The notes under the pieces: generated by a model
Told to the model about the DNA's origin: nothing
What the model saw: the letters and a program-made list of their open reading frames with translations, nothing else
Database searches by the model: none
Origin: Basidiobolus meristosporus CBS 931.73
Taxonomy: Eukaryota > Fungi > Basidiobolomycota
DNA: 38,506 nt
NCBI GenBank assembly: GCA_002104905.1
Contig: MCFE01000763.1
Location: forward strand, 1-38,506
Direction: 5' to 3'
Position numbers and translations under genes: made by a program
Shown: piece by piece, positions 2,635 to 38,256 of the stretch
Numbering within the stretch: the first letter of the stretch is position 1
Layout: every line of letters starts with the position of its first letter

Positions 2635-2997
2635 TTGAGTAGACACTCCTCTACAGCCTTTATATTCGTTATTATATCTTCTTGGTTTGTAAGTCACACA
2701 ACATGCAACTTTAATATTAATCACGCTTGGGAAGAACCCAGAAATGGTTTAAACAGTCTAGTTCATCCGGTATAAAGTAGTACTTTTCTTGGATTGGATT
2801 CATTACTAAGCCATATCTCTTACATTTGTGCATCGATAACAACAGTGTCTTGAACGACCATTACTCACTACTCAGTATCATCTAGACAATTACGACAAAA
2901 CAATAGGAAAAGATACTTTATGATGCTTGCTTCGAGCGAAGGTAGTACTTCAAGAATATTTGCTTTCAAACTCTTTCGTAATGACCAAGTACAAGCT

Positions 2998-3079
2998 GGT
3001 GAGGTGGCCGAGTGGTCTAAGGCGCTGCGTTCAGGTCGCAGTCTCTTCGGAGGCGTGGGTTCGAACCCCACCCTCATCA
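2998..3079 (+). tRNA. tRNA-Leu-CAG: tRNA-Leu (anticodon CAG), class II with long variable arm
   Basis: Acceptor stem GGTGAGG/CCTCATC, D arm GCC..GGC, anticodon arm CTGCG-TTCAGGT-CGCAG, T arm GTGGG-TTCGAAC-CCCAC, discriminator A, downstream TTTT terminator. Confidence 0.97.
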
Positions 3080-3449
3080 TCTATTTTACTCTTAGCTTGC
3101 ACAAAAATGATAAGAGGAAATATCACCATGCTAACAGTCACTGGGCAGTCTGTCAATCTCGAATCTTTGTGTTACCAAAGTCAATCCGGTAACCCTGCCA
3201 GACATTCTCTCTAATATCAACCTTTTCGGTGGAGGGCAGCATCACTAAGGACTGAGGGTGAGTATGTTAGTACGTAAGTGGATATCTAATATTAATGCCC
3301 GCAGCTCTGATCATGATACAGGTGTGTGCAAGTAAAAAGCTAATCACAAGCAACAACAAGTGTAAGAATGTCATTTGAATTTTATTGATTGAAAATTTTC
3401 AGTTGTAGCGTGGTGATGACTACCTACATCTTCAGCTCATGTCATCGCA

Positions 3450-3947
3450 CTAATTGTATTGAACGTTTTGCTCTGGACAATCTTCTACGCATTGCATCTC
3501 TGCCACAGGGGTTGTGTATTGTATATCTTGGGTGGGCTGCATCAGGACGTAGGGAGAGAAAGAACTATCTTCCAAGTGTTCCGCTCCCTTTTGCTTAGCA
3601 TATTCTAATGCATTGGCCCTACCCTCCAGTTCGAGACTGGGCCCTGCTTGATACTTGACATTGAAGCCTTTGTTGCTGTTGGCGTTAGCAATGTTCAGGT
3701 TATCGTGCTTTCTGGTCACCGTGGTGAAAACCTGGCGCAATAACGGGGATTCGACATTCGTCGTCTTAACGACAGGCAAAACTCGAGCGTTTTGGTAGCA
3801 ACCGCTCGCATACTGTGCACATGGTAAGCTGCGATAATGAACCCCTCTATACTCGCGAGTACATGGAGAAGAACAGCCGATTGGGGCAGCAACAGCAACT
3901 TGAAGAGCGGCAAGGCTTAGAATCACTGCTACGGTAGTAGAGCGCAT
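3450..3947 (-). CDS. Secreted protein family A, copy A2 (165 aa, unknown function)
   Basis: Signal-peptide-like N-terminus MRSTTVAVILSLAALQVAVA-AP, Cys motifs CSSPC and PCAQYASGCYQ, upstream TATA-like sequence, three degenerate paralogs in the window. Confidence 0.75.
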   Translation of the reverse strand: MRSTTVAVILSLAALQVAVAAPIGCSSPCTREYRGVHYRSLPCAQYASGCYQNARVLPVVKTTNVESPLLRQVFTTVTRKHDNLNIANANSNKGFNVKYQAGPSLELEGRANALEYAKQKGAEHLEDSSFSPYVLMQPTQDIQYTTPVAEMQCVEDCPEQNVQYN

Positions 3948-4321: not shown

Positions 4322-4867
4322 TTAATGTCTGTTTCCACTGAAATATCTAACTTTGAAGTGGCGACGAGCAGATCTCTTATACTTCTTGTACCCACCTCTA
4401 AGCGCACGCGCTGCTGGCTGAGTGATGATAATTTGTGGCTGTTGCTGCTTGGGCTGGTACAGGGTTTGATCAATGACCTGCGCTTGGTCGAACTGGTTTG
4501 AGTTGGACAAGGCATTGGCTTTACTGGAGGAATGGCCATTGATTTTGTCCAGCAAGGCTTGGGATGGTTGAAGATTGGAAATATCGAACCCTTGCAACCC
4601 AGAGAATCCTGGCTGCTCACCCGAAGTCTCGCTTGTCTGCATTGGCTCACTCATCTCCGAATCATCCCCCTCCTCAGTTGATGGCTGGTATTCTTGACTG
4701 GGGGCCGAAGTGTCCTGATAACAAGCACCCTGTTGTTCGACGCATGGCTCATTGGTGAAGGCTACCTGGGAGTCACCGAGTGGGGTAGCGGAGATTGCTT
4801 GCAGTGAAGCGATGGCGGAAGCTAGCAAGAGGAAGGAAAGCTGCATGACTGGCTGGTGGAGTCTCAT
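4322..4867 (-). CDS. Secreted Q/S/E-rich protein family B, copy B1 (181 aa; true start may be Met8 at 4846)
   Basis: Signal peptide MQLSFLLLASAIASLQAISA-TP, PCVEQQGACYQ motif, acidic middle, basic C-terminus. Nearly identical intact paralog at 28159-28710. TATAAA at about 4882-4887 is very close to Met1, which favours Met8. Confidence 0.8.
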   Translation of the reverse strand: MRLHQPVMQLSFLLLASAIASLQAISATPLGDSQVAFTNEPCVEQQGACYQDTSAPSQEYQPSTEEGDDSEMSEPMQTSETSGEQPGFSGLQGFDISNLQPSQALLDKINGHSSSKANALSNSNQFDQAQVIDQTLYQPKQQQPQIIITQPAARALRGGYKKYKRSARRHFKVRYFSGNRH

Positions 4868-7107: not shown

Positions 7108-7496
7108 ACCTTTCACAAGATTTGGTAATATGCTATCATGAAATTCACACACAAGTATTACTGTTGGAAGCACTAGTCTAGGTTGATGATTCTATAAACA
7201 GAATAGGAAGCATCAAACAGAAGCACTAAGACTAATTAGTGATTATAATGGGATCCCAGGCCCTGATCTTATGGGAATAAATAGTCACATACATCTACTA
7301 GTGGATTTATACTTATTGTCCAGCATCCACCAGAGGTTTTTGACAGAGTAGCACTTTTATTTATACTGTTGTAAATGATGTGTAGCATGTATGGTTAGAA
7401 TACCCCAACATACACTGTTTACTTCTTTATCCAGCTACTTTGTATACTTGCATTATTTCTAGCATTCAACATTGAACGTAATAGATTTATTAATCA

Positions 7497-7694
7497 TCAG
7501 ATACAGCATCTTTGGCCAGACTTGCATCCAGTGTCCCAGAACACGGATCTCCAACCGGTGGGGCAGCTACCGGAAACGCACAAGGAGCCTCTTGAGTTCC
7601 CTTGGGCTTGGCACGAGAGAGCATCTACGGAGCCGGAACTGGAGCTGGCCACAAGGAAGGCGACCATCAAGGAGACTGCAAATTTCTTCATCAT
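7497..7694 (-). CDS. Secreted defensin-like peptide D1 (65 aa; six Cys, C-x10-C-x4-C-x12-C-x5-CC)
   Basis: Signal peptide MMKKFAVSLMVAFLVASSSSGSVDA, then LSCQAQGNSRGSLCVSGSCPTGWRSVFWDTGCKSGQRCCI. TATATA about 55 nt upstream. Three tandem copies. Confidence 0.85.
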   Translation of the reverse strand: MMKKFAVSLMVAFLVASSSSGSVDALSCQAQGNSRGSLCVSGSCPTGWRSVFWDTGCKSGQRCCI

Positions 7695-7833
7695 TGTTTT
7701 GATTGAGAGATTAGTGTGTGAATGATGTCTAGCAGCAAGGTTAGCTCAATATATAGGCGTCATTTCCCCATTGTTGCACATACTTTTGTCAATAGTCGCT
7801 GTGGCTAGCTCTACGAATGGTTGTACAAGAGAA

Positions 7834-7895
7834 GAAGGTTACCTGGGTAATGTAAACCAGCTCAGAAGGTTACCTTGGTAATGTAAACCAGTTCC
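7834..7895. promoter_or_regulatory. 31-bp tandem duplicated element with TTACC-NN-GGTAA dyad upstream of D genes
   Basis: gaaggttacctgggtaatgtaaaccag occurs x2 here, x1 at about 9130-9157 and x2 at about 10404-10461, where the first unit is the perfect palindrome TTACCCGGGTAA. Regulatory role is inferred from position only. Confidence 0.4.
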
Positions 7896-8794
7896 AGGAA
7901 ATTATATGTATTGATGGCCAACATCAAAAGAGCAGTAGCATTGAAATGGTATTTCTCGTATGGCATAGTGTCACCTCTTTATTCAAACATATAAATGATG
8001 CGGCAATAATATGCAAAATCAAAGGTAGCAATCCTTGAACTGGGCTGCTCATCACATTTTGTGCCACACAGCTTTTGCCGTGCAATACACTCATCTACGA
8101 AGAATGTTCTAAATGCAGTACCACACGGCTGAAAGTAAGCCTTCCCTGTTATTTTCAAGTGTAGAACTACTTTGCCGATAGTTCAATAGATAATTCATTA
8201 GGTAGATACAATATCTTTGGTGTCCCGGAATACCAACCTTTGACCAATACCTGAAGGGCGCAAGTAGAGAGTGTCAACACAGCTGGCCTCAATAATGGCA
8301 GGTAAGGAGAGTTGTAACCTGTAAAGTAAACAAGTACTCTTGAAGCATGTGCAATATAGGTCATTACGTACACTGCTAATTATCCTTCCTCTGTGCAAAG
8401 CACTCACTCAGCGGTTGTTGTGGCTAGGCAGTCTGTAACAATGGAATATGTAAACCAGCTCTATACACGAATAACAATGTAATGGTTACATTCACTCTAC
8501 TTATTGACAGTTATAGCAATCATGATATGCAGACATTGTTGCTTATACAATGTAAATGATATAGAGCACTGTGGCGAACAACAGTTCAATAGATGGTTCC
8601 CAATACAGTTGCACATATTAAGCCCCAAAGATGAGACCAGCATATTTTGCTACACTATTGACTCCCATTATACTGCTATATAGTTGCTGCTTGCTTCTTA
8701 AGCACTAATCTCCGTATATTACAATACGGCTTGTCTCTAGCATCTGCATTGTCATGTGTACGTTCCACATTGAACGTATTGGATTTATTGATTA

Positions 8795-8990
8795 TCAGAT
8801 ACAGCATCTCTGGCCGGACTTGCATCCGGTATCCCAGAATACTGATCTCCAACCGGTGGGGCAGCTACCGGAAACGCACAAGGAGCCTCTTGAGTTCCCT
8901 TGGGCTTGGCACGAGAGAGCATCTACGGAGCGGACTGGAGCTGGCCACAAGGAAGGCGACCATCAGGGAGACTGCAAACTTCTTCATCAT
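8795..8990 (-). pseudogene. Defensin-like peptide D2, frameshifted in the signal region
   Basis: Mature-peptide coding sequence is intact and encodes the same 40 aa. 2 nt are missing (agccggaact becomes agcggact) near 8930-8937. Confidence 0.75.
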
Positions 8991-10066
8991 TGTTTTGATT
9001 GAGAGCTTAGTGTGTGAATGATGTCTAGCAGCAGGGTTGGCTCAATATATAGGCGTCATTTCCACATTGTTGTACATACTTTTGTCAATAGTTGCTGTGG
9101 CTAGCTCTACGAATGATTGTACATGAGAAGAAGGCTACCTGGGTAATGTAAACCAGTTCCACAGAGCTGCAGCATTGAGATGATGTTAATACACAAAAAC
9201 AAATTGGCAATCCATGAACCGGGTTGCTCATCAGACATGCTATTGTGTAGTGGTAGTCCTACACCAATAAAGCATCTTTGGCCTCTAACTGGAAAGTAAA
9301 TCAAGACCTCAAGATGCATAGACAATCTCGATAATTACGTTTACTGTAACATGTACATTCCATGACTGTTGTGGCTAAGCAGTCTGTGACAACGGAATGA
9401 GTGTGGATACATTGATTACAGTCAAATCTACCATTTGAGACTTAAAGCGGTAATGATATTCAATCGAGATATGCAAAGTCCTAGGTAACACTGTCGCTTA
9501 TAAAGTATAAATGAATCTTGATTTTTAGCTAGATGCTGCTATTTGCAATAACACGCAAGTATTGATACAACTTTAGTGTTTGTAACGACTTGCATTGATT
9601 TTGCTACAAGTAAATATAGATATGAGATTGCTGTCCCACTTGGGAATTGAAATATGTTGTATTCTTTACAACGACTTAGCCGATAATTCATTAGATAATT
9701 TATTAGGTAGATACAACATCTTTGGTGTTCCGGAATATCAAACTTTGACTTATGCCTGAAAGGCGCAAGTAGAGAGTGTCAACACAACTGGCCTCCATAA
9801 TGGCAGGTAAGGAAAGTTGTAATATGTAAGGTAAGCAAGTCCTCTTGACGCATGAGCAATATAGGACATCATGTACACTGTTACTTATCCTTCCTCTGTG
9901 CAAAACACTCTCTCACATAAAGAGGAGGCAAACATATTTTGCTACACTTTGGCTATATAGTTGCTGCTTGCTTCTTAAGCGTCAATCTCCGAATACTCTG
10001 TCCTGTTTCTAGCATCTGCATTATTGTGTGTAAATTCAACATTGAACATATTGGATTTATTAACTA

Positions 10067-10264
10067 TCAGATACAGCATCTTTGGCCAGACTTGCATCCA
10101 GTATCCCAGAACACGGATCTCCAACCGGTGGGGCAGCTACCGGAAACGCACAAGGAGCCTCTTGAGTTCCCTTGGGCTTGGCACGAGAGAGCATCTACGG
10201 AGCCGGAACTGGAGCTGGCCACAAGGAAGGCGACCATCAAGGAGACTGCAAGTTTCTTCATCAT
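10067..10264 (-). CDS. Secreted defensin-like peptide D3 (65 aa)
   Basis: Identical to D1 except F5L in the signal peptide. Same TATA and promoter. Confidence 0.85.
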   Translation of the reverse strand: MMKKLAVSLMVAFLVASSSSGSVDALSCQAQGNSRGSLCVSGSCPTGWRSVFWDTGCKSGQRCCI

Positions 10265-11339
10265 TGTTTTGATTGAGAGCTTAGTGTGTGAATGATGTCT
10301 AGCAGCAAGGTGAGCTCAATATATAGGCGTCATTTCCCCATTGTTGCACATACTTTTGTCAATAGTCGCTGTGGCTAGCTCTACAAATGGTTGTGCAAGA
10401 GAAGAAAGTTACCCGGGTAATGTAAACCAGCTCAGAAGGCTACCTGGGTAATGTAAACCAGTTCCACAAAGCTGCAGCATTATGGCATAGTGATACAGAG
10501 TTAATGTGGTATTAATACACAAAATCAAAATCCATAAACCGGGTTGCTCATCAGATATGCTATTGTGTAGGGGTAGTTCTACACCAATAAGGCATCTTTG
10601 GTCTCTAACGGGAAAGTAAATCAGGACCTCGAGATGCATAGACAATGTTGATAATTACGTTTACTGTAGCATGTACATTCTATGGCTGTTGTGGCTAAGC
10701 AGTCTGTAACAATGGAATGAGAGTGAATACCGTTTGAGACTTAAAGCGGTAATGATATTCAATCAACATATGCAGGTAACACTGTCGCTTATAAAGTATA
10801 AATGATATATAACATTGTTGCACATGGTCTGCGATAAACACTAGCTAGAGAACCCCAAAAATACCGATGAATCTTGATTTTAAATCTAGATGCCGCTATT
10901 TGCAATAACACGCAAGTGTTTGTTGGATGACTCTTTGATTTTCGTCATTCCACATACAAGTAAATATAGATATGACTAAGTGGTATGCAATGGCTTTGTG
11001 GATAAGAAGCTTACTACTTTCCATTCATTAAAGTGGTGAAGTTTATCCGCAGCTTACATTAATAAGACTTTACCCGTGGAAATACACACTGAAGATTAAG
11101 ATATTTACCATCTGGGCACTAACTGCCTGATCCTCTTTCCCTCATATCCCGACATGTGCTTGTGCATACAAGTGCGTTGTTAGACTTGGTATTGCCACTA
11201 TTGCCCTACTTAGAGTTGAACCAAGAGTACTGGTGAAATGAGCAAAGTGCCATTTAATGAATCAATAAGTGCTGCGCATTGTCCTTGTCAAGCCACAACA
11301 AAATATTCGGTTAGGCCATCAATCCATTCAAGTTGTTCA

Positions 11340-13520: not shown

Positions 13521-13982
13521 TCAGCACAATGAGTGTATTGAATATTTTGTTCTTTCACGCATTGTCTCTATTACTGGGGTTGTGTACTGTACATCTTGGG
13601 TGGGCTGCATCAGAACGTAGGGAGAGAAAGAACTGTGGTCCTTTTGCTTGGCATATTCTAATGCGTTGCCCCGACCCTCCAGCTCAAGAATGGGCCCTGA
13701 CTTGACACTGAAGCCTTTCTTTCGACTGGCATTAGCAATGTTCAGGCTATCATGCTTTCGGGTCACGGTAGTGAAAACCTGACGCAATAACGGGGATTGG
13801 ACATTGGGCGTCTTAAAGACAGATAAAACTCGAACGTTTTGGTAGTAATCGGTCGCATACTGTACACATGGTAAACTGCGATAATGAACCCTTCTATACT
13901 CGCGAGTGCATGGAGAAGAACAGCCGATTGGGGCAGCAACGGCAACTTGATTCGCGGCAAGGCCTACAGTAATAAAGCGCAT
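13521..13982 (-). pseudogene. Secreted family A, copy A3 (open 153-aa frame but degenerate)
   Basis: Hydrophobic signal core shortened (MRFITVGLAANQ), the second Cys of PCx6CYQ changed to Tyr, and the C-terminus frameshifted relative to A2. Confidence 0.65.
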
Positions 13983-14146
13983 GTGGAGCGAATAACGTAT
14001 TTGTGGGCTGTTGTATAGCATACAACATGGGTTAGCTGGGAAAATTGCTATTATATATTTCATGGATTAATCAGGTCATTACTCACACAATTATTATACT
14101 TTTCGAGTACCATCGGTATTTTGCATTCCCTTCACTGGTTATTTTT

Positions 14147-14657
14147 TCAATTTTCTTCCATTATTTTGTGGAACTCACGATGATTTTCTGGAGTATCTTT
14201 GAAGTGGCGACGAGCAGAGCTAAAATACTTCTTGTACCCACCTCTACTGCTGGCTGAGTGATGATAATTTGTAGAGGGTTTGATCAATGACTTGCGCCTG
14301 ATCGAACTGATTTGAGTTGGACAAGGCATTGGCTTTACTGGCAGAATGGCCATTGATGTTGTCCAGTAAGGCATGGGATGGTTGTAAATTTGAAATGTCA
14401 AACCCTTGCAACCCGAAGTCTGGCTCGTTTGCATTGGCCCACTCATCTCCGAATCATCCACCTCCTCAGTTGACGGCTGGTGTTCTTGACTGGGGGGCTA
14501 AGTGTCCTGAAAATAAGCACCCAGTTGTTCGACGCATGGCTCATTGGTTGAGGCTACCTGGGAGCCACCAAGTGGGGTAGCGGAGATTGCTTGCAGTGAA
14601 GCGATGGCGGAAACTAGCAACAGGAAGGAAGGCTGCATGACTGATTGGTGAAGTCAT
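14147..14657 (-). pseudogene. Secreted family B, copy B2 (pseudogene)
   Basis: 2-nt deletion after Met1, CYQ changed to YFQ, in-frame TAG at QDT*, several internal deletions. Confidence 0.85.
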
Positions 14658-14857: not shown

Positions 14858-15531
14858 TTAAAAGAGGGCACAGTAGTTCTTGGCGCAATTAGTGTTGTCA
14901 AAAACGCAGTCCGAGTCCTTGGTGCATGTCTGATATTCGGAGCCACTGCAAAAAGACTTTAGCGTCAGTAAGAATGCAAACTTACTAAATGATACCTATA
15001 TGCTACCTTTGGATATTGTTGATGTAACACCACTCTGGTGCACTTTGCTACATATCCAATGCCAAACGAGATAATCGCTACTACTCCATGGCACTGAATA
15101 CCTTGTAAGTTACTGTTTCTGTACAGAAAACTCCATGGCAACTTACCCTTCTCCAGCAGTAGCCTTTGTTACAGCCGCAGATATCCTTGCCGCCTTTTTG
15201 CTTAGTAATCCCACAGACGAGGTTTGAGCTTTTTGCTGTCTGCTCAAAGCGATCCAGGGCATCAAAAAATACGTCAAGAGCACGCTTTGCCACACTATTG
15301 CTCGGTGCTCCCAGGCTTTGAGTAAACTCCTGGATCATCTTCACACATTCCGCGAACCTTACTTCCTTACCAGCGGGAATGGCCTTGAGTGAGGATGGAA
15401 ATTCTTCACTACATGCCTTTACGTTTTTATATAGCTCCACATACTCGGGGGTTGCCGTAATACTGGGCTGGTCACGGTCGAGAGGAGCGGCAAAAGAGGA
15501 TGCCGGCTAAGAGGATATTTCTGAAAAGCAT
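14858..15531 (-). pseudogene. Cys-rich secreted family C, copy C2 (three exons, two frameshifts)
   Basis: Introns 15094-15146 (GTAAGT..CAG) and 14946-15006 (GTAGCA..TACTGAC..CAG). Exon 3 encodes GSEYQTCTKDSDCVFDNTNCAKNYCALF*. Frameshifting deletions in the signal peptide (14 nt) and exon 2 (8 nt) relative to C3. Confidence 0.8.
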
Positions 15532-20229: not shown

Positions 20230-20958
20230 TTAGAGGCTCGAGAACACCTTGATGGCATCCTCAGCGGTGGATCGTGCGCTTGCTGGGTTAGCTCCAGTGA
20301 CAACTCGGCCGTCAGTTTGTGTAAAATCGGCAAACGGAGTGGGGGGTGCCACATACTCGGCTCCAACAGCGGCCGCTCCTTCTTCGATTGTAGCCACATT
20401 GGCTGATTTGATAATATCAAGCAGGCTAAGCATCACCTCACCCTCCGTGGTGAACCCGGTGACCTTCTTGCCAGCAATGATGGATTTGCCTGTGGTGCTG
20501 TCAACGATGCCTGGGAGAATGGCTGGTCCATGACACACAGCTGAAACAACACCTCCACGCTTGTATATGTCCTCGGCAATATGCTGTAGGCCACGAGCCG
20601 TAGGGTAATCCCACAAGGTCGCGTGCCCGGCAGAGGCAAAGAATAGGCCATAGTCAGCAGGGTTGAGGTCCGACGCCTTGCGAAGATGTGAGTTCAGTTT
20701 GACATTGAATGGATGTGAAGGGTCGTTCAGCACCTTTTGATCATCCTCGGAGAGAAAGTCTTTCGACAAGGAGTGCTCATCGACTCCGTAGGTACCAGTC
20801 TCGGAGGCGAAGTCAACCTCGAACCCGGCCTCAACAAGCGCTTCGTAAGGATGCAATGCTTCCGTATAGAAAAGTCCAGTCTTACTACCATTGGCGTAGA
20901 AGGGCTCGTTATAGCTGGTGATGGCTAGTAGTGCTCTGCGTGGAAGGTTGGCTGGCAT
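20230..20958 (-). CDS. HSP31: DJ-1/PfpI family glutathione-independent glyoxalase / Hsp31-like chaperone, copy 1
   Basis: Motifs TGLFYTEALHPY, FFASAGHATLWDYP, AVCHGPA (nucleophile Cys-His), VTGFTTEGE and VVTGANPASA match yeast Hsp31. TATA about 45 nt upstream. Intronless, 242 aa. Confidence 0.95.
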   Translation of the reverse strand: MPANLPRRALLAITSYNEPFYANGSKTGLFYTEALHPYEALVEAGFEVDFASETGTYGVDEHSLSKDFLSEDDQKVLNDPSHPFNVKLNSHLRKASDLNPADYGLFFASAGHATLWDYPTARGLQHIAEDIYKRGGVVSAVCHGPAILPGIVDSTTGKSIIAGKKVTGFTTEGEVMLSLLDIIKSANVATIEEGAAAVGAEYVAPPTPFADFTQTDGRVVTGANPASARSTAEDAIKVFSSL

Positions 20959-23674: not shown

Positions 23675-24403
23675 TCAAAGACTTGAGAACACTTTGATAG
23701 CATTCACCGCAGTAGATTTGGCACTTGCAGGGTTAGCGCCAGTGACCACACGACCATCAGTCTGAGTAAAGTCGGCAAAAGGAGTAGGGGGTGCCACATA
23801 CTCTGCCCCGACCGCCGCTGCTCCTTCCTCGATTGTAGCCACATTGGCCGATTTGATCAGCTCAAGCAGATTTAGCATTTCCTCACCCTCAGTGGTGAAC
23901 CCAGTAACCTTTTTGCCAGCAATGATGGACTTACCAGTGGTACTATCCATGATACCTGGGAGAATGGCGGGTCCATGACATACAGCCGAAACCACACCCC
24001 CGCGCTTATAAATGTCTTCAGCAATATGCTGCAGGTGACGAGCTGTAGGATAATCCCACAGGGTTGCGTGGCCAGCAGAGGCAAAGAACAGCCCGTAGTC
24101 AGCAGGGTTGAGATCTTCCGCCTTGTAAAGCTGCGAGTTCAGTTTGACATTGAATGGATGTGAAGGGTCGGCCAGCACCTTTTGATCATCTTCGGACAGG
24201 AAATCCTTAGAGAGGGAGTGCTCATCCACTCCGTAGGTACCAGTCTCGGACGCAAAGTCGACCTCAAACCCGGCCTCAACAAGCGCTTCGTAAGGATGCA
24301 ATGCTTCGGTGTAAAACAGTCCGGTTTTACTGCCGTTGGCGTAGAAGGGCTCGTTATAGCTGGTGATGGCTAGTAGTGCTCTGCGTGGAAGGTTGGCTGG
24401 CAT
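23675..24403 (-). CDS. HSP31: DJ-1/PfpI family Hsp31-like glyoxalase, copy 2
   Basis: Same motifs as copy 1, intact 242 aa. Confidence 0.95.
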   Translation of the reverse strand: MPANLPRRALLAITSYNEPFYANGSKTGLFYTEALHPYEALVEAGFEVDFASETGTYGVDEHSLSKDFLSEDDQKVLADPSHPFNVKLNSQLYKAEDLNPADYGLFFASAGHATLWDYPTARHLQHIAEDIYKRGGVVSAVCHGPAILPGIMDSTTGKSIIAGKKVTGFTTEGEEMLNLLELIKSANVATIEEGAAAVGAEYVAPPTPFADFTQTDGRVVTGANPASAKSTAVNAIKVFSSL

Positions 24404-26742: not shown

Positions 26743-27645
26743 ATAGAATTCATCTAATAATTATCTATCACTGAAAAATGCCATCTTGCAAACAAAATCT
26801 TAAGCATTTTTCTTTTCATTGCTTGCTGATTTATAATGTGAATTTGTAGCAATATAGATTGATATTTTGATTGGTATTTTGATTTGATTTTTCAATGATA
26901 GTTGGGTAACAACAAGCTGTCAGAATGTGCAAACCGTCCTTTAGCGTACTGGGAATGTACTATATACATAATCCTGTAAAGTACAGTCGTAACGATACCG
27001 AGCTGCAGATGCTTCCTATTTATAGGGGAAAAAATCGAAAAAATTTTCCCTTATTTCGTGGCCAAATCCCACAATATTAGAAGAGACAAAAAAATCTGTA
27101 TTATATATACTGCTCCGTACTGGAAACATTGACTATGAAATAACCAACTACGTAAGAACAGTGCCATTCCTGTGTGCACGCATCAAGCCCTTGCTTGAGA
27201 AGTCGTAGTATGAGTCGTTTTGCGTCTCACGAATACTACAATCGTATTTCGGCTTAGACCAAAAATCATGTTTACGGCAATTTAACTCCCAATATCGATA
27301 CACTTATTTTACAGTTCGATGCAGCAACTACACAAACATTTAAAATGGCGTTTACAAAGGCTCACTGACATCCCAAAGTAGGGACCTACCGATTCTCCAA
27401 TACGGTAGTTGATACATAACGCTGATTGAACTGTTGCATGCACTATTTCACCCTTGCTACCAACCAAATGTGAAGTGTCCCTGTTCCTTCGATGTCTGTC
27501 GTTGTAGGTTATCAATTCTTTTTGGACTGGTGCACTGTGTCTACCATGGATTGATAGTCTGTGAGACTGTGAGAGTAGGGTAGTCGCGCAAGGAGGGTTT
27601 ATTTGTTTTGCCTACTCAATATTCTCTGTTTAGGTTGATTTATCT

Positions 27646-27935
27646 GTATTTTGTCACGAGGCCTTTAGTGCCGTTGGCATTAGTAATGTTCAGGTTATCG
27701 TGCTTTCTGATCACGGTGGTGAAAGCCTGGCGCAATAACGGGGATTGGACATTGGGCGTCTTAACGACAGGTAAAGCTCGAGTGTTTTGGTAGTAATCGG
27801 CTGCATACTGTGCACATGGTGAGATGCGATAATGAGCCCTTCTATACTCGCGAGTGCGTGGAAAAGAACAGGGGCAGCAACGGCTACATGATTTGTGGCA
27901 AGGCCTGGAATCACTGCTACGGTAACAAAGCGCAT
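27646..27935 (-). pseudogene. Secreted family A, copy A4 (pseudogene)
   Basis: Frameshift after MRFVTVAVIPGLATNHVAVAAP, and a large deletion of the C-terminal coding region. Confidence 0.85.
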
Positions 27936-28158
27936 GTGGAGAAACAGTTGAATAATGAATTTGTGTACTGGGTAAATTCCTATTATGTATAGCATAGCTC
28001 ACCTTTCCTTGACTAATCAGGTCATTACTCATACCCTCAGTATTTTACAAACGTTTCCATAGTTTCTTATTTTTTCAATTTCCTTCCATTATTTTGTGGA
28101 GCTCATCATGACTAAACCTGATATGTGTAGTTACATGGCTTTTGTCTTTATTCTATTG

Positions 28159-28710
28159 CTAATCTGAGTATTTGTTTCCACTGAAATATCTAACTTTGAA
28201 GTGGCGACGAGCAGATCTCTTATACTTCTTGTACCCACCTCTAAGCGCACGCGCTGCTGGCTGAGTGATGATAATTTGTGGCTGTTGCTGCTTGGGCTGG
28301 TACAAGGTTTGATCAATGACTTGCGCTTGGTCGAATTGGTTTGAGTTGGACAAGGCATTGGCTTTACTGGAGGAATGGCCATTGATTTTGTCCAGCAAGG
28401 CTTGGGATGGTTGAAGATTGGAAATATCGAACCCTTGCAACCCAGAGAATCCTGGCTGCTCACCCGAAGTCTCGCTTGTCTGCATTGGAGCACTCATCTC
28501 TGAATCATCCCCCTCCTCAGTTGACGGCTGGTATTCTTGACTGGGGGCCGAGGTGTCCTGATAACAAGCACCCTGTTGTTCGACGCATGGCTCATTGGTG
28601 AAGGCTACCTGGGAGTCACCGAGTGGGGTAGCGGAGATTGCTTGCAACGAAGCGATGGCGGAAACTAGCAAGAGGAAGGAAAGCTGCATGACTGGCTGGT
28701 GGAGTCTCAT
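28159..28710 (-). CDS. Secreted family B, copy B3 (183 aa)
   Basis: Nearly identical to B1, differing by two substitutions and the last few residues. Confidence 0.8.
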   Translation of the reverse strand: MRLHQPVMQLSFLLLVSAIASLQAISATPLGDSQVAFTNEPCVEQQGACYQDTSAPSQEYQPSTEEGDDSEMSAPMQTSETSGEQPGFSGLQGFDISNLQPSQALLDKINGHSSSKANALSNSNQFDQAQVIDQTLYQPKQQQPQIIITQPAARALRGGYKKYKRSARRHFKVRYFSGNKYSD

Positions 28711-28777: not shown

Positions 28778-29445
28778 TTATGCAACATAGATTGATTTAG
28801 CCTGGTTGCCTCGCCAGTTGCTACTTAAAACATGACCCCAAACCTTATGCCTAGCTAGTGATTCTCGTAAGTGAGACAGTGCATATACGAAACACCACTC
28901 TAGTGCACTTTGCGGGGGCGCTGCATATCCAATACCAAACGAGATAATCCCTACTCCACCATGGCACTGAATACCTTGTAAGTTACTGTTTCTGTACAGG
29001 AAATATCATGCCAACTTACTCTTCTCCAGCAGTAACCTTTGTTACAGCCGCAAATATCCTTACCACCTTTTTGCTTAGTCACCCCACAGACTAGATTTGA
29101 GTTCTCCCAGCTTTTTGCTGTCTTCTCGAAGCGATCCCGGGCATCGAAAAATACGTCAACCCCATTAGTTGCATCAAGAGCACGCTTTACCACGCTATTG
29201 CTAGGTGTTACCAGGCTTTGAGTAAACTCCTGGATCATCTTCACGCATTCCGCGAACCTTACTTCCTTACCAGCGGGAATTGTCTTCAGTGAAGATAAAA
29301 ATTCTTCGCTACACGCCTTTACGTTTTTAAATAGCTCCACATGCTCGGGGGTTGCCGTAATACTGGGCTGGTTGCGGTCAAGAGGAGCGGCAAAAGAGGA
29401 TGCAAGCATCAAAGTACTGACTAAGAGGATATTTCTGAAAAGCAT
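28778..29445 (-). CDS. Cys-rich secreted family C, copy C3 (exons 1-2 intact, exon 3 deleted; possibly non-functional)
   Basis: TATAAA at 29488-29493, signal peptide MLFRNILLVSTLMLASSFA-AP, dibasic KR site. Intron 28967-29019 (GTAAGT..CAG, 53 nt) restores GYCWRR-CHGG...EWC. A deletion of about 260 bp relative to C2 removes exon 3, so the frame runs into unrelated sequence to TAA at 28778. Confidence 0.65.
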
Positions 29446-30845: not shown

Positions 30846-30927
30846 GGTGAGATGGCCGAGTGGTCAAAGGCGCTGCGTTCAGGTCGCAGTCTCTCTGGAG
30901 GCGTGGGTTCGAACCCCACTCTCATCA
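30846..30927 (+). tRNA. tRNA-Leu-CAG: tRNA-Leu (anticodon CAG), second copy
   Basis: Full cloverleaf, acceptor stem GGTGAGA/TCTCATC, TTTTT terminator just downstream. Confidence 0.97.
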
Positions 30928-33870: not shown

Positions 33871-34599
33871 CTAAAGACTTGAGAACACTTTGATAGCATC
33901 CACGGCGGTGGATTTAGCACTTGCAGGGTTAGCTCCAGTAACTACCCGGCCATCAGTCTGGGTAAAGTCGGCAAATGGAGTAGGGGGTGCCACATACTCT
34001 GCTCCGACCGCCGCTGCCCCTTCCTCAATTGTGGCTACATTGGCCGATTTGATCAGCTCAAGTAAATTTAGCATTTCCTCACCCTCAGTGGTGAACCCAG
34101 TAACCTTTTTGCCAGCAATGATGGACTTACCAGTGGTACTGTCCATGATTCCTGGGAGAATGGCGGGTCCGTGACATACAGCTGAAACCACACCCCCGCG
34201 CTTATAAATGTCTTCAGCAATATGCTGCAGGTGACGAGCTGTAGGATAATCCCAAAGGGTTGCGTGGCCAGCAGAGGCAAAGAACAGTCCATAGTCAGCA
34301 GGGTTAAGATCTTCTGCCTTGTAAAGATGTGTGTTCAGCTTGACATTGAAAGGGTGTGAAGGGTTAGCCAGCACCTTTTGATCTTCTTCGGAGAGGAAAT
34401 CCTTGGACAGTGAGTGTTCATCCACTCCGTAGGTACCAGTCTCGGAGGCAAAATCGACCTCAAACCCGGCCTCAACAAGCGCTTCGTAAGGATGCAATGC
34501 TTCAGTGTAAAAGAGTCCAGTTTTACTGCCGTTAGCGTAAAATGGCTCGTTATAGCTGGTGATGGCAAGTAGTGCTCTGCGTGGAAGGTTGACTTGCAT
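33871..34599 (-). CDS. HSP31: DJ-1/PfpI family Hsp31-like glyoxalase, copy 3
   Basis: Same motifs, intact 242 aa. Confidence 0.95.
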   Translation of the reverse strand: MQVNLPRRALLAITSYNEPFYANGSKTGLFYTEALHPYEALVEAGFEVDFASETGTYGVDEHSLSKDFLSEEDQKVLANPSHPFNVKLNTHLYKAEDLNPADYGLFFASAGHATLWDYPTARHLQHIAEDIYKRGGVVSAVCHGPAILPGIMDSTTGKSIIAGKKVTGFTTEGEEMLNLLELIKSANVATIEEGAAAVGAEYVAPPTPFADFTQTDGRVVTGANPASAKSTAVDAIKVFSSL

Positions 34600-35800: not shown

Positions 35801-36324
35801 AAGTTAGCCTTTACCGTGTGAACAGTGATCGCAATTTGGTCAATTGTATCCTTGATATCATTCTAAACAATAAAACTTTGTGCAATGGGGTGTTGCTCTC
35901 CTTTCGTATCTTTGTTATCTCGTAAAATAGTTCTATCAGCTGTCCTTGAGTAACGCTTAGTTGTTGGACACCCGCTCTTTTATATTGTGTTTTCAAAGTT
36001 CAGCCATATTCTACCTGCGATCACAAGAAATTGGTAAACACAAGATATTTATTTATTGTTTGCCGAGAATTGGGATATTGATTAGATAATACTTAGATTA
36101 ATTAAGCCTGCCTCGGACTTCGTTCTTGCCATGGTTAGTTACTTTACTTATGTTGTGCGTTAACTACGCTACTACAATTAGTAACCTGGGAGCCACAACA
36201 AATGCATACGGATATATTATAGTCTGTAGATTTCTCCAGAATGTCACTTAACAATGGCGTAGTGACTACTTAAGCCAACTCCAAGGCTTCTGTTGGTGCC
36301 TGTCCGCTTTGTATTTGCAATTTG

Positions 36325-36560
36325 TGCCTCGAATGAAAGACTGCCATTCATACCTTCTCTCCACAACTCGCCAACATCTGCCTTAATGCGAACAAGTGGC
36401 ATATCCTCCTGAAGCACAGATACCCGGCACTCCAACCCTCTCATGGTCAGCCTCATCCAGGGTGGTGAGATAGGACACGGTACTGTTGAAGTCCCTGACT
36501 CTCTGACTAGGGTCTTCCAGGTATCTGGGAAGGCCTTCACTCTCGAAAGTAAGGGTGATC
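36325..36560 (-). pseudogene. Alpha/beta hydrolase relic 4
   Basis: cgaatgaaagactgccattcataccttctctccacaa...gggtcttccaggtatctgggaaggccttcactctc matches about 31965-32250 with deletions. Peptide ADVGELWREGMNGSLSFE is visible. Confidence 0.85.
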
Positions 36561-37960: not shown

Positions 37961-38256
37961 GAGAATCTGAGTACATCTGAGGTGAGTTGTACTGATTTGC
38001 GGTAGCTTGTTTGTGGCCAGAATGGCCAGTAGGCTGGGGGAACTGAGGGGTATTTCTGGGCGATCACTGGCCAAATTTACTAGGCAAATCTGACCAATTA
38101 GCATTTCAAGGATTTCAGCCAATCAGAGCCTTTACTTTGCCCGATGATTGATCAAGCCATCTCCCAATGAGCACACATCAATTTATTGATCAAATTTTGT
38201 TGGATCCAGGATTTGAACCCACAACCATGGGTATGGAAGGGTTAGGGATAACCACA

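Follow-up and report, generated by a model that had tools for sequence, protein, structure and literature searches.

Tandem genes for a putatively secreted six-cysteine peptide with a predicted beta-defensin-like fold near a chromosome end of Basidiobolus meristosporus

Peptide genes near a chromosome end

The window that we analysed is a whole contig of 38,506 base pairs (bp) from the early-diverging fungus Basidiobolus meristosporus CBS 931.73 (assembly GCA_002104905.1), which carries the Joint Genome Institute (JGI) gene model ORX79905.1. It contains three minus-strand copies of a gene for a small six-cysteine peptide at 7.4–10.4 kb, within repeat units that are 1298 and 1272 bp apart. A 30-nucleotide core has three exact matches in the window, against none expected by chance. 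TTAGGG repeats, among them occasional TTAGG units, occupy the contig from about 38260 onwards to its end, which places the array roughly 28 kb away from a telomere. This agrees with the original prediction for this stretch, made from the letters of the DNA, which placed the array in a fungal subtelomere. The features of the array are as follows.

7497–7694, minus strand: copy 1, an intact 65-codon gene in the list of open reading frames and its translation (residues 1–25 putative signal peptide, residues 26–65 mature six-cysteine peptide; stop codon at 7497–7499)
7500–7619, minus strand: mature peptide of copy 1 (40 residues), with which all searches and fold predictions were made
8795–8990, minus strand: copy 2, with the identical 40-residue peptide in frame; the signal-peptide part is 2 bases short as assembled
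10067–10264, minus strand: copy 3, an intact 65-codon gene with F5L in the signal peptide and one synonymous change in the mature part
7748–7755, 9044–9051 and 10318–10325, minus strand: TATA-like box about 60 nucleotides 5' of the ATG, in three of three copies by sequence and copy alignment (putative function)
7486–7491 (copy 1), minus strand: AATAAA directly after the stop codon, kept in three of three copies in the copy alignment (putative function)

All three copies translate to one identical 40-residue peptide (henceforth the 40-mer). Its cysteine spacing is C-x10-C-x4-C-x12-C-x5-CC, with a CP-x-G turn and two Trp; the net charge is +3, the isoelectric point 8.7 and the expected oxidised monoisotopic mass 4217.8 Da. 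Residues 1–25 consist of MMKK, 12 hydrophobic residues and SSSSGSVDA, with V at position -3 and A at -1, a layout from which we infer a signal peptide by rule. The original prediction had described the same spacing, turn, Trp pair and positive charge, and had called the mature peptide invariant, which it is: copy 2 differs from copy 1 in the mature part by six synonymous and no non-synonymous codon differences. It had also counted three copies with signal peptide and mature part. This was borne out for copies 1 and 3 and not for copy 2 as assembled, where the two missing bases put the ATG out of frame and leave two of the three genes in the window intact. Each missing base stems from a two-base run, so the frameshift of copy 2 is possibly an assembly error.

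We found 11 copies of the peptide gene on four contigs (the window and three further loci). Eight are fully intact, one lacks the first of two ATGs, and two are frameshifted at different places, namely copy 2 of the window and the middle copy of one paralogous locus (L001). The cluster of predicted proteins at 90% identity comprises four gene models, each from a different contig; a further model (P0031) lies on yet another contig. Variant sites in the mature part of the 11 copies comprise 8 synonymous and 5 non-synonymous changes, against 27 synonymous and 93 non-synonymous sites available. The mean pairwise ratio of non-synonymous to synonymous substitution rates (dN/dS) of the mature part is 0.20, which indicates that the 40-mer is under purifying selection. 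Amplification to at least 11 copies under such selection suggests a benefit of dosage.

The JGI gene models differ from our reading at the 3' end. In P0001–P0003 and P0031, a predicted intron removes the final C-I-stop and adds tails that differ between copies; ORX79905.1 (P0003) covers copy 3, and its tail matches that copy. Another model (P0004) is a fusion of two copies. We rejected the spliced 3' ends because the tails are not conserved and nearly all homologues stop at CC-[IV], which makes the unspliced 65-residue reading the conserved one.

Between the peptide genes lie two repeat pieces that are 88% identical (8162–8410 and 9667–9915), and because their ends resemble the 3' end and other stretches of the peptide gene, these pieces may be its decayed remnants. 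Read in the frame that resembles the peptide gene, the two pieces differ at many amino acids and are thus probably non-coding. In the gene model P0031, on its own contig, a similar piece is spliced onto a peptide gene.

Homologues in fungi and hexapods

We searched 1.84 billion protein cluster representatives with the 40-mer using phmmer (cut-off E ≤ 1e-3) and obtained 21 matches; a search with the family profile added five further proteins. Three long matches were set aside as chance or repeat matches in which only partial stretches of the query align: a 1298-residue Ranatra protein with 17 short stretches (P0006), and P0016 and P0022 (bacterial). The named members are listed below.

Basidiomycota: Leucoagaricus sp., Pleurotus eryngii, Pleurotus djamor and Coprinopsis sp.
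Ascomycota: Pseudocercospora musae, Septoria linicola, Thermomyces dupontii and Aspergillus sclerotialis
Mortierellomycotina: Benniella sp.
Sciarid fungus gnats: Bradysia odoriphaga and Pseudolycoriella hygida
Springtail: Orchesella dallaii

The family thus spans at least four fungal phyla and fungus-feeding hexapods, neither of which the original prediction, which proposed profile searches across fungal genomes, had noticed. Single-domain members are 45–78% identical to the Basidiobolus domain. The family signature is C-x(10-13)-C-x(4-7)-C-P-x(11-13)-C-x(5-14)-C-C-[IV]. The alignment shows no exception to Cys2–Cys6 or to the Pro that follows Cys3; Cys1 is absent in one member only, and the Cys3–Cys4 loop, CP-x-G-[WYF]-R-S-V-F-[WY]-D-x-G-C, hardly varies. 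Members differ widely in net charge, from -4 to +6.

The approximately 27 members examined all end at CC-[IV] or close to it, a few with 2–14 extra residues, and in the ascomycete members the cysteine domain is immediately preceded by a KR site. These two features identify the domain of about 40 residues as the conserved product. The domain also behaves as an autonomous module: a 136-residue protein (P0007) consists of three tandem copies of it, and in two larger proteins (P0021 and P0026) it stands at the C-terminus. The latter, a secreted metagenomic protein of 330 residues, has three repeats of the form GLKAD-x-GKY-x-ARC before the domain and no Pfam match.

The genomic settings of the homologues vary. 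Benniella sp., another early-diverging fungus, has seven homologous genes for proteins of 78–81 residues within 20 kb, in both orientations (JAWHKU010000004.1, approximately 1.869–1.896 Mb). Five of these copies encode identical proteins, a sign of independent recent amplification or of gene conversion. The Pleurotus eryngii gene is single-copy and intronless and lies among housekeeping genes. The contig of P0032 yielded no genomic context.

For members outside Basidiobolus, the annotations say no more than hypothetical or uncharacterised. None of 21 family members reached any threshold in a Pfam scan, and the family therefore appears undescribed. In the literature consulted, trans-defensins (alpha-, beta-, theta- and big defensins) are described from animals, and the defensins described from fungi are of the cis (cysteine-stabilised alpha-beta, CS-alpha-beta) type only (PMC8877149, PMC5234102), as the original prediction had assumed in speaking of a lineage where the trans-defensin fold is not the norm. 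No report of the family turned up when we searched the literature, with few papers from subscription journals, for fungi (Basidiobolus included) or sciarids with trans-, beta- or big defensins.

Predicted fold and proposed function

We predicted the structure of the 40-mer with AlphaFold2. The mean predicted local distance difference test (pLDDT) score was 78 from the single sequence and 86.9 with the 21-sequence family alignment, for which all five models scored ≥81. The alignment-based model has a short helix at residues 3–6, followed by strands. Both models were compared with known structures by two independent aligners, VIA-align (48161 PDB chain representatives, counting chains at Z ≥ 2) and Foldseek (matches at E ≤ 10).

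The match lists consisted almost entirely of defensins. With the single-sequence model, 18 of 18 chains found by VIA-align were defensins or defensin-like. With the alignment-based model this was true of 25 of 26, the exception being a Cys-rich module of a plant receptor. These matches comprised beta-, big and alpha-defensins, crotamine, helianthamide, tick carboxypeptidase inhibitor (TCI), platypus DLP and anemone peptides. The best was AvBD11 (Z 3.3, root-mean-square deviation (rmsd) 2.2 over 34 residues, 18% identity), and others were AvBD3 (Z 3.2), crocodile CpoBD13 (3.0), hBD2 (3.0), oyster big defensin (2.6) and crotamine (2.4). Foldseek placed the sea-anemone peptide tau-AnmTx Ueq 12-1 and hBD1 first (template modelling (TM) scores 0.55–0.61), followed almost only by beta- and alpha-defensins and anemone toxins. 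A fold search of the ESM Atlas returned Defensin_beta clusters at TM 0.56–0.65 among mixed rows, and the nearest language-model cluster was also Defensin_beta, at a weak score of 0.75. Neither CBM1 nor CS-alpha-beta structures occurred among the matches of either model. Among matches of the predicted models, a knottin occurred only as a squash inhibitor at TM 0.15 in Foldseek, and none was in the VIA-align lists. The ordered superposition on defensins, in which AvBD11 shares 18% identity over 34 residues (about six residues), suggests the disulfides C1–C5, C2–C4 and C3–C6.

The Basidiobolus spacing (10-4-12-5-0) has the central C-x(3-5)-C and the terminal CC of beta-defensins, and across the family the C2–C3 spacing is 4–7 residues and the CC is invariant. 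The small antiparallel sheet and N-terminal helix of beta-defensins are present in the predicted model. Classic beta-defensin loops follow approximately C-x4-8-C-x3-5-C-x9-13-C-x4-7-CC. No member of the family fits this pattern, because its first loop has 10–13 residues.

Several observations weigh against a defensin-like defence peptide. Pfam gave no match to the 40-mer or its precursors even at E ≤ 10, and among the 21 family members the best score against Defensin_beta or Defensin_big was E = 1.5, for one member (Defensin_beta). The family profile found nothing among PDB sequences, and phmmer with the Basidiobolus peptide found only chance matches there (HECTD1 and a glucanase). The first inter-cysteine loop is longer than in classic beta-defensins, net charge is not conserved, and the very high conservation across phyla (50–78%) is unlike that of typical fast-evolving antimicrobial peptides. 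In absolute terms the fold matches score poorly (Foldseek E 0.25 and Z 3.3 at best) and carry no formal significance, and AlphaFold2 may have been steered by the cysteine pattern alone. Weak scores are usual for 40 residues, and given the weakness of the individual scores, the support for the fold comes from the near-purity of the match lists. Where the original proposal concerned a trans-defensin-like fold, and called for a fold search, it is backed within the limits of prediction by two AlphaFold2 models, two aligners, the Atlas and the language model; no sequence profile linked the family to animal defensins at significance.

The product of the family is most likely a secreted defence peptide. 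As a whole, the explanation that we favour, at somewhat better than even chances, is a secreted, defensin-folded peptide of defence or competition that belongs to an unnamed conserved family and was amplified in Basidiobolus. The signal peptide would be cut after VDA, freeing a 40-residue peptide that ends at CC-I. Three disulfides would lock it into a fold in which a short helical turn at the N-terminus packs against a small sheet of antiparallel strands, and the compact 4.2-kDa peptide would be released into the surroundings, where it would act extracellularly in defence or competition. Amphibian and reptile guts and dung, as well as litter, are the habitats of Basidiobolus. The peptide may bind a conserved target through the near-invariant Cys3–Cys4 loop and not through bulk positive charge; we favour such binding over a cationic attack on membranes because charge varies and the loop, with its aromatic and Arg residues, hardly does. 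The target could be microbial, following the precedent of defensins. Or it could be an enzyme or a channel, the kind of target that anemone toxins, helianthamide and TCI have on this scaffold. The gene would have been amplified in duplicated chromosome-end regions for dosage and kept by purifying selection.

The same loop, together with the lack of a conserved charge, would also suit a specific protein target. The peptide could be a toxin or enzyme inhibitor on a defensin-like scaffold, directed against predators or competitors among animals, such as fungivores and gut hosts, and not at microbes. Its structural matches include non-antimicrobial proteins of defensin fold, namely tau-AnmTx Ueq 12-1, Hact-4, ATX Ia, helianthamide, TCI and crotamine. 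Sea-anemone toxins of this type, helianthamide (an alpha-amylase inhibitor) and TCI would be its parallels. However, fungus gnats and a springtail encode a homologous peptide themselves, which would be odd for a toxin against fungivores, and no sequence motif of the matched inhibitors was found in the family. We regard this alternative as unlikely. Strong conservation across phyla, the one invariant loop and the single copy among housekeeping genes in Pleurotus eryngii could instead be those of a secreted signal, such as a pheromone-like or developmental cue with a conserved receptor. An effector would account better than a species-specific signal for the presence in hexapods as well as fungi, the tandem arrays of Basidiobolus and Benniella and the fusions with other secreted domains, and we consider a signalling role very unlikely.

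In UniProt the five gene models of Basidiobolus are labelled "CBM1 domain-containing protein", a name that presumably derives from a PROSITE profile, and a stand-alone divergent CBM1 could bind cellulose or chitin through aromatic residues. The peptide is indeed small and disulfide-rich with three conserved aromatic positions, and the domain is C-terminal or modular in P0026, P0021 and P0007. Yet Pfam CBM_1 matched none of 21 members at E ≤ 10, a pattern of the PROSITE PS00562 type matches no member, neither fold search returned a CBM1 structure, and homologues outside Basidiobolus are named only "uncharacterized". We therefore rejected the automatic label, for which profile, pattern and fold gave no support, and consider a CBM1 identity highly improbable. 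The original prediction had itself raised assignment to a known non-defensin fungal module as a possible objection, and CBM1 was the candidate that the labels offered. Finally, two of the 11 copies are frameshifted and the region is rich in segmental duplications, as might be expected if the reading frames were non-functional by-products of a subtelomeric repeat. The dN/dS of approximately 0.2, the six-cysteine homologues in four fungal phyla and hexapods, and the conserved promoter-like box and AATAAA leave this explanation next to no probability.

Origin, neighbouring genes and comparison with known systems

In the sciarids the gene is found on scaffolds of 2.8 and 193 Mb, in each case with one GT-AG phase-1 intron of 64–66 nucleotides. 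This intron sits inside the Asp codon of a conserved D-A-[LI]-S-C, 4–7 residues before Cys1. The closest relative of the Basidiobolus peptide, at 78% identity, is a protein (P0005) from the Logan assemblies SRR34115440, -462, -466 and -526 of one project. Its locus has a candidate unannotated intron with the position and phase of those in sciarids, and the lengths of exon 1 (64 nucleotides) and of the candidate intron (66 nucleotides) equal those of Bradysia odoriphaga; the source genome is probably dipteran-like. The Thermomyces gene has two introns, both inside the signal peptide. Phase-1 introns are common after signal peptides generally. A phase-1 intron just before the cysteine domain is also a feature that has been used to link big and beta-defensins (PMC7203481).

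Early-diverging fungi and sciarids have the motif VDA-LSCQ, around the putative cleavage site, in common. This shared motif and the patchy spread of the family suggest gene transfer between fungi and fungus-feeding hexapods, and the broad fungal range favours a fungal source. A tree of the domain (41 columns, imperfect input rows) left 15 of 20 inner branches unresolved, and we draw no direction of transfer from it. The family could also be a true homologue of animal big and beta-defensins, on a scaffold that either predates the split of animals and fungi or crossed between them by gene transfer in one direction or the other. We think this doubtful, with the odds well against it; were it true, it would overturn the picture of fungi with only cis-defensins. 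If our reading is correct, a beta-defensin-like fungal family would add a second defensin-type scaffold to fungi, offer a concrete test case for convergence versus shared origin of defensin folds, and provide a probable example of a peptide gene exchanged between fungi and hexapods that feed on them. With its 40 residues and 4.2 kDa the peptide is easy to synthesise, and there are members from culturable fungi (Basidiobolus, Pleurotus).

The region of the peptide array is made up of segmental duplications, in which there are also genes for other small secreted proteins, three for DJ-1/PfpI proteins and one for a hydrolase. The further features of the window are the following.

3450–3947, 13521–14063 and 27640–28032; 4322–4867, 14147–14655 and 28159–28710; 15081–15440 and 28951–29445: block of small secreted-protein genes, present three times in the window, without Pfam domains
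20230–20958, 23675–24403 and 33871–34599: three paralogous DJ-1/PfpI (Hsp31-like) genes of 242 residues
31502–32425: alpha/beta-hydrolase gene (dienelactone hydrolase / S15-like, 307 residues)
36244–36540: apparent decayed fragment of a second alpha/beta-hydrolase copy, nearer the telomere
2997–3081 and 30846–30927: two tRNA-Leu(CAG) genes

The small secreted-protein block also adjoins peptide arrays on contigs MCFE01000283 and MCFE01000651. One of its proteins, of 165 residues, has a sub-threshold match to mussel Myticin-prepro (E 0.006). The DJ-1/PfpI genes recall the subtelomeric HSP31-family genes of yeast. A stretch resembling a tRNA T-arm lies just inside the TTAGGG repeats, at approximately 38200–38230.

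We compared the family with the systems that it resembles. Like CBM1, it is a small disulfide-bonded fungal module with aromatic residues, sometimes at the C-terminus of larger proteins; unlike CBM1, it has no Pfam CBM_1 match, no match to a PS00562-type PROSITE pattern and no CBM1 fold match. The fungal CS-alpha-beta defensins (plectasin, copsin and micasin) are likewise secreted, disulfide-rich, similar in size and thought to act against competitors, and tandem duplication occurs among copsin paralogues (PMC6461984). Their CxxxC ... CxC framework is, however, not that of the 40-mer, with its C-x4-C and terminal CC. The sea-anemone peptide tau-AnmTx Ueq 12-1 (PDB 5lah) was the top Foldseek match of both models (TM 0.58, 36% identity over 33 columns), with E-values of 0.25–0.75 that are not significant. 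Its PDB entry has 45 residues, which makes it the longer peptide, and its cysteines number more than six.

The C-terminal domain of the big defensin Cg-BigDef1 (PDB 6qbk), an invertebrate protein related to the defensin fold, matches at Z 2.6, with an rmsd of 2.1–2.6 over 32–35 residues, and also ends in CC, whereas the Basidiobolus precursor (a 25-residue signal peptide and the 40-mer only) lacks the hydrophobic N-terminal domain of big defensins. Vertebrate beta-defensins (PF00711; hBD1, hBD2, AvBD3, AvBD11, CpoBD13) provide the best fold matches (Z 2.8–3.3, TM 0.55–0.61, 18–30% identity over 33–34 residues). They share with the family a signal peptide followed by a peptide of about 40 residues, six cysteines with a Pro after the central C-x4-C, a G-x-C that leads up to Cys4, and the terminal CC. 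The animal members of the new family have a phase-1 intron before the cysteine domain, as described for genes of beta- and big defensins (PMC7203481), at a place where such introns are common in general; the Basidiobolus, Benniella and Pleurotus genes are intronless. The new family differs further in its loops (first loop 10–13 residues versus about 6, third 12–14 versus about 9), its strong conservation, its charge, which is not consistently positive, and its presence in fungi. Because no profile threshold was reached, the first loop is longer and the N-terminal domain of big defensins is absent, we do not file the family under Defensin_beta or the big defensins. What can be supported is that the family is new and that its predicted fold is beta-defensin-like (trans-defensin-type).

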